64,000 bases of DNA from NCBI GenBank assembly GCA_002269645.1, contig NIVC01003444.1, forward strand, positions 1 through 64,000, written 5' to 3'. Shown here one piece after another: positions 7,657-55,557 of the stretch (its first letter is position 1; every line of letters starts with the position of its first letter). Position numbers and translations under genes: made by a program. The DNA comes from Macrostomum lignano. Lineage: Eukaryota. Under the pieces are notes generated by a model, which worked only from the letters and a program-made list of their open reading frames with translations, searched no databases and was not told where the DNA came from.

Positions 7657-7806
7657 TCAAGCCTCAACACAATGACATTTATTAATGTGATACAAAGTGA
7701 CGTCCATTTTGGAGCCGTCCTTGCAGTAGACAGTCTTCTTGGTAGGCTTCGGCTTGTAGCTTTCGGGTTTGCAGCACTGGCACACGCCCATCACCTTGAC
7801 CTCGCC
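7657..7806 (-). CDS. SSPO-like exon 27: C-terminal cystine knot second half + stop
   Basis: [17 protein letters not shown]...TVYCKDGS...INKCHCVEA*; TGTAG acceptor. Confidence 0.9.
   Translation of the reverse strand, partial: GEVKVMGVCQCCKPESYKPKPTKKTVYCKDGSKMDVTLYHINKCHCVEA

Positions 7807-55557: not shown

Follow-up and report, generated by a model that had tools for sequence, protein, structure and literature searches.

Temporary adhesion in flatworms is among the few bioadhesive systems for which a two-protein model has been worked out. The glue protein Mlig-ap2 of Macrostomum lignano (GenBank MH586845) is 14,794 amino acids (aa) in length; it contains VWD, TIL, C8 and LDL domains in the N-terminal part and TSP1 domains in the C-terminal part (Wunderer et al. 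2019, PMC6410801). It carries 46 repeats in two blocks, 21 of 255 aa followed by 25 of 221 aa; the protein is O-glycosylated with Gal-beta1,3-GalNAc (positive for peanut agglutinin, PNA) and is required for adhesion (PMC6410801). In M. hystrix and M. spirale, proteins of the ap2 type reportedly contain three VWD and as many as five LDL domains (PMC8621496), and the ap2 orthologs (ap2a/ap2b) of other Macrostomum species map to the Mlig-ap2 repeats RP-1 and RP-2. In this study, we analyzed a stretch of 64,000 nucleotides (nt), positions 1 to 64,000 of contig NIVC01003444.1, which is referred to as the window. One gene fills most of its minus strand. We consider it likely that the product is a giant secreted protein of mucin-like character, disulfide-polymerizing and heavily O-glycosylated, from a flatworm of the Macrostomum type, and that the gene is an ortholog or close paralog of M. 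lignano BOX15_Mlig011629g1 and a paralog of Mlig-ap2.

As judged from the open reading frame (ORF) maps and the splice junctions, the minus strand carries this single gene, with the ATG at 55557 and the stop codon at 7657–7659; the limits 7657–55557 proposed in the initial annotation are the exact ends of the gene. It contains ~28 exons, and its conceptual product is ~12,000 aa once the indels are repaired. The 5′ part is composed of 20 small exons, followed by exon 21, which is 28,498 nt in size; the long open frames at 12.5–41 kb lie on the minus strand. The gene is collinear, exon by exon, with two M. lignano proteins, NCBI BOX15_Mlig011629g1 (referred to as P0003) and UniRef100_A0A1I8GJ02 (P0002), the latter being a 'VWFD domain-containing protein'. 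All 20 unique 5′ exons are intact, each giving one unbroken high-scoring segment pair (HSP) against the M. lignano relatives. The features of the gene are, from 5′ to 3′:

55433–55557, minus strand: exon 1, with the ATG and a signal-peptide-like segment; donor CCTGT/GTGAGC.
53413–54461, minus strand: exons 2–3, which encode a conserved N-terminal module rich in Cys, with an EMI-like spacing of the cysteines, then EGF (EGF_2, E = 1.3e-5).
52428–52598, minus strand: exon 4, a small Cys-rich module conserved in M. lignano, with no Pfam family.
48975–51920, minus strand: VWD1 (51714–51920 and 50635–51063; E = 6.6e-16), C8-1 (50082–50375; 2.3e-14) and TIL-1 (48975–49211; 3e-10).
44879–48693, minus strand: VWD2 (48184–48693 and 47261–47476; 6.8e-21), C8-2 (46560–46805; 3.5e-5), TIL-2 and a Cys-rich spacer (45513–45971 and 44879–45028; TIL 1.3e-6).
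42308–44780, minus strand: VWD3 (44601–44780 and 43534–44187, including C8-3; VWD 1.5e-29, C8 4.3e-16), TIL-3 and LDLa1 (42308–42733; TIL 8.2e-11, LDLa 3.8e-8).
41086–41875, minus strand: LDLa2 to LDLa5, one per exon (Ldl_recept_a 1.1e-31, four stretches).
12480–40977, minus strand: exon 21, 28,498 nt, with 19 tandem units of ~1,491 nt, or 497 aa (splice junctions and repeat anatomy).
19970–21460, minus strand: unit 14 of exon 21, a clean copy with zero differences from the consensus, taken as the reference copy.
12018–12403, minus strand: exon 22, a VWC-like Cys-rich stretch and TSP1 number 1 (TSP_1 4.1e-11; collinear with the Mlig-ap2 C-terminus).
10914–11966, minus strand (coordinates delimit the open frame rather than the exon): TSP1 numbers 2–4 with a TIL-like module between (TSP1_spondin 1.1e-17, three stretches).
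8950–10419, minus strand: TSP1 numbers 5–6, then a TIL interrupted by an intron, a VWC-like module and the first part of TSP1 number 7 (Pfam).
7657–8647, minus strand: the remainder of TSP1 number 7, the last TIL (1.7e-6) and the C-terminal cystine knot.

The array in exon 21 is flanked by two scaffold regions. The hydrophobic N-terminus appears signal-like, as judged by eye, and the Cys-rich module that follows is 67–68% identical in two other Macrostomum-type sequences. Its cysteine pattern, GWC...C...C...CCxGYxGxNC, is compatible with EMI, which it resembles in the spacing alone; no EMI match was returned by Pfam at E ≤ 10, for either the window or the M. lignano protein, or by the PDB profile search. 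Pfam E-values of the N-terminal scaffold domains range from about 1e-5 to 1e-31. LDLa5 is completed by the first 27 nt of exon 21. The C-terminal part contains seven stretches of TSP1, TIL domains of which at least two are supported by Pfam, and VWC-like pieces; the cystine knot spans the last two exons (about 8600–7968 and 7806–7657), and after correct splicing and a 1-nt repair Cys_knot is matched with E = 7.7e-5 and 23.4 bits, against a cutoff of 24. The domain list of the initial annotation, with EMI, EGF, three VWD-C8-TIL, five LDLa, seven TSP1 and a knot, was thus recovered by Pfam except for EMI, the knot lying near threshold.

The junctions of exon 21 are as follows: exon 20 ends with ...GACTGCCAG/GTAATG, exon 21 ends with ...GAGCCAA/GTATGT, and the latter is joined to TAG/CTACGCC of exon 22. 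LDLa5 leads straight into unit 1. Each unit is made up, in order, of an A domain (165 aa), a linker (105 aa, 73% Thr), a B domain (163 aa) and a second linker (64 aa, 69% Thr). A domains are marked by the motifs ICIDFDG...IGIYGCF and B domains by CLDTNLMAD...SMLGCF; the start and end motifs of both occur 19 times each in exon 21, so the 38 central domains of the initial annotation could be counted as 19 A and 19 B, alternating with linkers of 69–73% Thr. About 78% of the protein belongs to this Pro/Thr/Ser (PTS)/bead array. A and B share 25% identity over the full length (E = 1e-9) and have four cysteines in common, namely the first residue, a CxxxxxxC pair and the terminal GCF; they are paralogs.

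The units differ by about a dozen substitutions in 28 kb. Their identity is close to 100% over 1.5 kb, and the M. lignano assembly breaks within the same array; it is conceivable, though rather doubtful, that the 19-fold array is in part an assembly artifact, with copies collapsed, expanded or mis-joined. Against this, the units carry linker length variants (+21, +3, −33) as well as small indels, and the distinct length variants, −5 among them, stand in a non-periodic order, which points to individual copies supported by reads; the junctions at both ends of the array are unique.

Within M. lignano, the two collinear proteins are far closer to the window gene than Mlig-ap2 is. With the N-terminal 1,688 aa of the window protein as query, BOX15_Mlig011629g1 was matched with 71% identity at 84% coverage, and the Logan transcript SRR13614416 (P0004) with 70% identity; all relatives recovered by the word-indexed searches were of the Macrostomum type. 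P0002 and P0003 are 88% identical to each other. The gene model of BOX15_Mlig011629g1 is truncated, as its contig ends inside the array, and within the literature that could be searched no published description of BOX15_Mlig011629g1 or A0A1I8GJ02 was found. The M. lignano locus used for comparison, L002 (NIVC01000879.1), also contains a homogenized tandem array with B and A in alternation; one open frame of 2,130 aa extends there from 29174 as far as the end of the contig. The array unit of the M. lignano gene is 2,217 nt in period, compared to 1,491 nt in the window, owing to longer linkers, and diverged A′ and B″ copies with extra LDLa-like modules precede the array, which are lacking in the window. 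At L002 these lie at 26864–29700 as single diverged copies B, A′ and B″, and the extra LDLa-like module CTGDNVRCLNAAGVSICAHVCDGIVECRNGEDE follows the first bead.

From these comparisons, the window gene appears to be an ortholog or a very close paralog of BOX15_Mlig011629g1/A0A1I8GJ02. Because L002 carries the alternating B/A array, the cassette and its amplification are shared with the M. lignano locus, and only copy number and linker length are species-specific. The initial annotation had named an amplification common to orthologs from many invertebrates as something that would speak against its proposal; this is partly what we found, since the M. lignano ortholog already has the tandem A/B cassette. 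The A and B copies of the window are 56% and 53% identical, respectively, to those of L002, compared to about 71% for the scaffold. An array that is near-identical within a species and diverges between species faster than the scaffold is a case of concerted evolution, and its homogeneity is probably maintained by unequal crossing-over or gene conversion.

The beads themselves have few relatives. They gave no Pfam match, and the PDB sequence/profile search with the A/B alignment returned only noise (E > 0.5). A word-indexed search of 5.8 billion proteins with a B+A query gave nothing, and the full HMMER search of 1.84 billion representative proteins gave a single match, P0002. As far as these searches reach, the A/B family appears to be almost an orphan. 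A scaffold fragment was also found in a metagenome: L001 (Joint Genome Institute (JGI) metagenome 3300066324, Ga0610648_003350) is a 486-aa fragment with VWD2-TIL-VWD3 and 66% identity over part of the query, presumably from a free-living flatworm in the environmental sample.

Evidence at the protein level comes from Dataset S2 (sd02.xlsx) of PMC6410801, cited there for footprint mass spectrometry. Tryptic peptides were predicted from the M. lignano ortholog, those of the A and B domains from the L002 open frame, and Dataset S2 holds N-terminal, one LDLa, A-domain and B-domain peptides of this ortholog. Detected by mass spectrometry were the peptide NNPNEQYCYSDDACLTK of the M. lignano exon-4 module, B-domain peptides including SANSAEDVATCSNNFIECASIGGLGLQTNR, and A-domain peptides including FTAPEVTAVR; all the N-terminal and LDLa peptides that we checked map exactly to P0002 and/or P0003. 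The corresponding Dataset S2 entry is 2,625 aa in length with 16 peptides, is annotated as MUC5B (1e-118)/mucin-17-like/Hemolectin, and is undiscussed in the text of PMC6410801. These peptides show that both bead types are translated and that they are present in the material left on glass. Dataset S2 also lists a third VWD/mucin-like M. lignano paralog of 2,969 aa, whose peptides, including the bead-like TTTSAETLTCLEDLIACASISGR, match neither P0002 nor P0003.

The overall plan of the window protein is that of Mlig-ap2: both are giant and secreted, with a VWD/C8/TIL and LDLa start, a tandem globular/Thr-rich array and a TSP1/TIL/knot end. Using the Mlig-ap2 sequence from the supplementary information of PMC6410801, tblastn against the window gave 12 N-terminal and 5 C-terminal HSPs, all in order, with 24–47% identity in the N-terminus; in the C-terminus, the identity is 31% over 456 aa (E = 2e-40, 10914–11966) and 38% over 162 aa (8950–10419). 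The likeness to Mlig-ap2, drawn as an analogy in the initial annotation, therefore holds for the architecture, and it goes further than analogy, as the two are collinear homologs. By the same token, the architecture is not entirely new, because that of the published Mlig-ap2 matches it; prior description was another finding that the initial annotation had regarded as damaging to its proposal.

The arrays of the two proteins are different. Each Mlig-ap2 repeat consists of a ~150-aa Cys-bounded segment followed by a Thr-rich linker, and a knot-like motif ends the protein. The Mlig-ap2 repeat types occupy two blocks, whereas A and B alternate in the window; the Mlig-ap2 repeats are rich in Lys, Arg and Glu and have no detectable similarity to A or B. 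In tblastn, RP-1 and RP-2 found no match to the window beads at E ≤ 1e-3, and when A and B were compared with RP-1, RP-2 and the four unique N-terminal ap2 domains by BLAST and hhalign, the full-length collinear alignment was not significant (P 0.03–0.09). Compared to the window gene, Mlig-ap2 lacks the EMI-like/EGF start, has a degenerate D1 and fewer LDLa, and contains a long Pro/Ala-rich C-terminal spacer that the window gene lacks.

The window gene could be the ap2 ortholog itself, the surface-binding component of the duo-gland glue. Its overall architecture as in Mlig-ap2 would agree with this, as would the three VWD and five LDLa, in line with what is reported for proteins of this type in M. 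hystrix and M. spirale (PMC8621496). However, M. lignano has a closer gene, with 71% identity compared to 24–37% for Mlig-ap2, and the beads find no counterpart in RP-1 or RP-2 by tblastn or hhalign, whereas the known ap2 orthologs do map to these repeats. We regard ap2 orthology as very improbable. Owing to the far closer M. lignano gene and to the mapping of ap2 orthologs to RP-1/RP-2, the window gene is better described as a putative paralog of Mlig-ap2 than as its ortholog.

Vertebrate SCO-spondin has a comparable layout. Its listed features begin with a Cys-rich module at the N-terminus and three D-assemblies; a cluster of LDLa and a tail of TSP1 and TIL that ends in a knot complete them, and the chick protein (Q2PC93) contains 27 TSR, 12 TIL, 13 LDLrA and 7 VWC (PMC8487547). 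The window gene shares with it a Cys-rich start, three D-assemblies and an LDLa cluster. It further resembles SCO-spondin in beads that may be beta-sandwiches, where SCO-spondin has one FA5/8C slot, in a shorter series of TSP1 alternating with TIL, and in a near-threshold CTCK; its 7 TSP1 and 2–3 C-terminal TIL are to be compared with the 27 TSR and 12 TIL of chick. SCO-spondin is a polymer-forming secreted giant as well, without a mucin array, and forms Reissner's fiber in the cerebrospinal fluid.

Accordingly, the window gene might be a flatworm SCO-spondin ortholog, a neural or midline fiber protein that gained a mucin array. The EMI-like Cys pattern, the three D-assemblies followed by LDLa, the TSP1/TIL alternation and the cystine knot all agree with the SCO-spondin features reported in PMC8487547, and invertebrate mucin-like proteins cluster nearest to the SCO-spondins (PMC4948705). 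We nevertheless find this identity unlikely: EMI went undetected in the Pfam and PDB profile searches; the gene has 7 TSP1 instead of 27, and the PTS/bead array takes up about 78% of the protein; M. lignano possesses several paralogs of the family, a glue among them; and peptides of the ortholog occur in material left on glass.

Mucin-like proteins of other invertebrates offer further parallels. Lang et al. 2016 reported that lophotrochozoan mucin-like proteins characteristically have F5_F8 beside PTS (PMC4948705). Hemolectin/hemocytin-type mucin-like proteins of lophotrochozoans and arthropods contain bona fide F5_F8_type_C in one or two copies, often followed by two further VWD units and without a TSP1 tail (PMC4948705), whereas the window beads fail Pfam and number 38. 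In the limpet, P-vulgata_3 (VWD x3, C8, TIL, LDLa x5) resembles SCO-spondin and shows expression in the pedal sole, and P-vulgata_6 (TSP1 x4 and cystine knot) matches SCO-spondin and Mlig-ap2 (PMC7333891). These two mirror the two ends of the window gene; they are known as separate partial transcripts, with no central array known, and a link between the two is conjectural. Like the gel-forming mucins MUC2, MUC5AC and MUC5B, the window protein combines D1-D2-D′D3 assemblies, PTS that is interrupted by small globular Cys domains, and CTCK. Different from it, the gel-forming mucins use CysD, of a fold unlike A/B, have D4 and VWC in place of LDLa or TSP1, and contain short PTS repeats with far fewer interruptions; in the window gene, Pfam found no match to CysD (Mucin2_WxxW), and LDLa and TSP1 are present. 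The class of giant SCO-spondin-like flatworm and lophotrochozoan mucin/adhesive proteins is thus already known. New here are the paralog and the complete structure of its gene, a cassette in which two beads alternate, a bead family that is nearly an orphan, and the link to unreported footprint peptides.

The beads had been identified as F5/8C (discoidin) domains in the initial annotation. This was not borne out by family profiles: F5_F8_type_C (PF00754) gave no Pfam match for the A and B domains of the window at E ≤ 1, nor for four M. lignano copies at E ≤ 10. We modeled the beads with AlphaFold2 (AF2). The B-domain model, built on a four-sequence alignment, is all-beta, with a predicted local distance difference test score (pLDDT) of 65 and a predicted template modeling score (pTM) of 0.66. 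Foldseek against PDB matched it to BIRC6 (E = 3.5e-4), CBM32 (5e-4 to 1e-2) and FVIII C2 (7.6e-3), and further to APC10/DOC1, galactose oxidase and the CBM32 of GH29; the template modeling (TM) scores of these matches are 0.35–0.5. The A-domain model is poor (pLDDT 49), and its fold search gave no significant match. The B model suggests membership of the galactose-binding-domain-like superfamily, the home of discoidin/F5_F8C/CBM32, as a weak resemblance at the level of the fold only. That an F5/8C slot of a SCO-spondin was amplified, as the initial annotation had it, is accordingly a conjecture, whose sole link is this weak fold resemblance of a model with pLDDT 65.

A more specific proposal can be put forward. 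The A/B beads would be Macrostomum-restricted, strongly diverged discoidin/CBM32-like lectins that bind Gal-beta1,3-GalNAc-type O-glycans of the neighboring linkers or of Mlig-ap2; the protein would then be a self-cross-linking lectin–glycan polymer and an overlooked third structural component of footprints or gliding mucus, and the Mlig-ap2 repeats would be more diverged copies of the same fold. Taken with all its parts together, we hold this proposal to be quite unlikely.

Several points weigh against a functional, secreted adhesive or mucus giant as the product of the window gene. The frame as assembled ends at 39943, only 345 aa into exon 21. Paired deletions at consensus columns 934 and 1174 occur in five consecutive units, U07–U11, and this pair, the chief argument for real variants, could have been spread by duplication, implying a decaying or truncated gene. 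The count of 19 units hinges on how the assembly resolved 28 kb of near-identical 1.5-kb copies. Because cytoskeletal proteins are also contained in Dataset S2, detection in footprints is no proof of specific secretion or of an adhesive role. The fold assignment depends on a single medium-confidence model with TM 0.35–0.5, the A model being poor, and the expression and splicing of the window gene itself are putative.

The state of the reading frame deserves closer attention, since the initial annotation called the protein complete. As assembled it is broken, by 21 frame-breaking indels in exon 21 and by a 1-nt shift near 8107 in the knot exon. Beyond 39943, the open frame of exon 21 switches between phases. 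All 21 indels lie in units 1–16, leaving eight of the 19 units clean, and the U19 tail requires a one-base shift for the correct donor phase. Single-C deletions account for 16 of the 21, and 14 of these 16 fall within C[C]G, with sites such as 39984, 35520 and 30787; column 934 is hit in nine units and column 1174 in five. The shift near 8107 (minus strand) lies in the unique last-but-one exon, upstream of the conserved knot; its signature, TGC[C]GC to TGCGC, is the same as that of the column-1174 deletions. With one C restored at 8107, the reading becomes collinear with Mlig-ap2, and the Cys_knot score rises from 19.4 to 23.4 bits. Across the 28-kb exon 21, there is no stop derived from a substitution; the length of the exon, 28,498, leaves 1 when divided by 3, as the flanking splice phases require; and the frames after each shift are fully open and conserved, knot cysteines included. 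Small introns were rejected as a cause of the shifts, which are only 1–5 nt and have no GT..AG pairs.

A pseudogene or truncated gene, with real frameshifts in a decaying array, would account for the 21 frame-breaking indels of exon 21 and the one in the knot exon, and it would explain why identical indels recur in runs of adjacent units, as inherited variants would. However, decay of this kind should not leave almost no substitutions and no substitution-derived stops over 28 kb, nor should nearly every indel be the loss of a single C in one and the same context; the downstream frames remain open and conserved down to the knot cysteines, the unique 5′ exons are intact, and the orthologous M. 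lignano array is open and translated. We consider a pseudogene improbable. Because the unique cystine-knot exon is broken by the same signature as the array, we read the frameshifts as assembly errors, most likely context-specific errors of sequencing or polishing. The few substitutions, the absence of substitution stops, the intact 5′ exons, the fitting exon length and the open, translated M. lignano array argue for consensus errors and not for decay.

Taken as a gene with an intact frame, the locus encodes what the initial annotation had described in outline, a secreted polymer-type mucin-like giant whose N-terminal D-assemblies and C-terminal knot enclose Thr-rich linkers and beta-sandwich beads; on this point our analysis agrees. 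By analogy with VWF, the gel-forming mucins and SCO-spondin, the C-terminal cystine knot would dimerize the protein, and the three N-terminal VWD-C8-TIL assemblies would multimerize it in the secretory pathway by linking the N-termini. The Thr-rich linkers could be turned by O-glycans into bottle-brushes, forming hydrated, stiff and extended rods. The 38 four-cysteine beta-sandwich beads may serve as compact spacers or as cross-linking/binding modules, possibly lectin-like, taking the role that CysD domains have in MUC2 and MUC5; multivalent binding of the beads to glycans, surfaces or partner proteins can be envisaged. Most likely, the animal leaves the product on the substrate as mucus or as a secretion of the adhesive type, for which gliding mucus, a frontal- or rhabdite-gland product, or a part of the glue are candidates.

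The gene adds a second giant relative of Mlig-ap2, of which M. lignano has several paralogs, translated and present in the footprint data. Genes of this type defy assembly in short-read transcriptomes; here one is seen at full length, with both ends and the array, and it provides an example of concerted evolution in a 1.5-kb two-domain cassette. For annotation, it serves as a warning that context-specific indel errors make such genes look truncated or pseudogenic.

The introns of the gene are rich in micro- and minisatellites. Tetranucleotide microsatellites, namely (TGAT)n, (TCTA)n with ~210 copies and (AGAC)n, fill introns and are located at 46817–47285, 49237–50079, 51104–51591 and 5849–6388; (AGAC)n and (TCTA)n fill the introns of the VWD1-C8-1-TIL-1 region (48975–51920). 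Spurious long ORFs in several frames arise from these tetranucleotide repeats. A 15-nt minisatellite, CTGGTGCTGGCGCC[C], is present at 42006–42252, inside an intron of the gene, and again at 61175–61511, 5.6 kb upstream of the gene start, with 16.5 and 22.5 copies, respectively. Another minisatellite, of 28 nt (GTCAGTTTTGGCGCCATCTATCCCAGAT), forms two arrays, 56209–56885 and 58527–58812, which bracket 57963–58557 (minus strand). The two open frames of ~100 aa between these arrays gave no Pfam match, and the bracketed region may represent a mobile element whose ends are formed by tandem arrays.

Other coding stretches lie on both sides of the gene. At 60436–60708 (plus strand), an exon encodes a PAS domain (PAS_9, E = 1.3e-10) similar to the N-terminal part of EAG/ERG-type potassium channels; this exon is part of a neighboring gene on the opposite strand. 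An open frame at 5288–5848 (plus strand) matches Neur_chan_memb, the transmembrane region of Cys-loop receptors, weakly and below the cutoff (E = 5.5e-4), and may be the 3′ end of another neighboring gene. Each end of the window carries a large satellite: ~126 copies of a 22-nt unit with a 44/66-nt higher order occupy 1384–4191, and a GA-rich array with a 40/100-nt period starts at 62782, runs to 64000 and extends past the window end.

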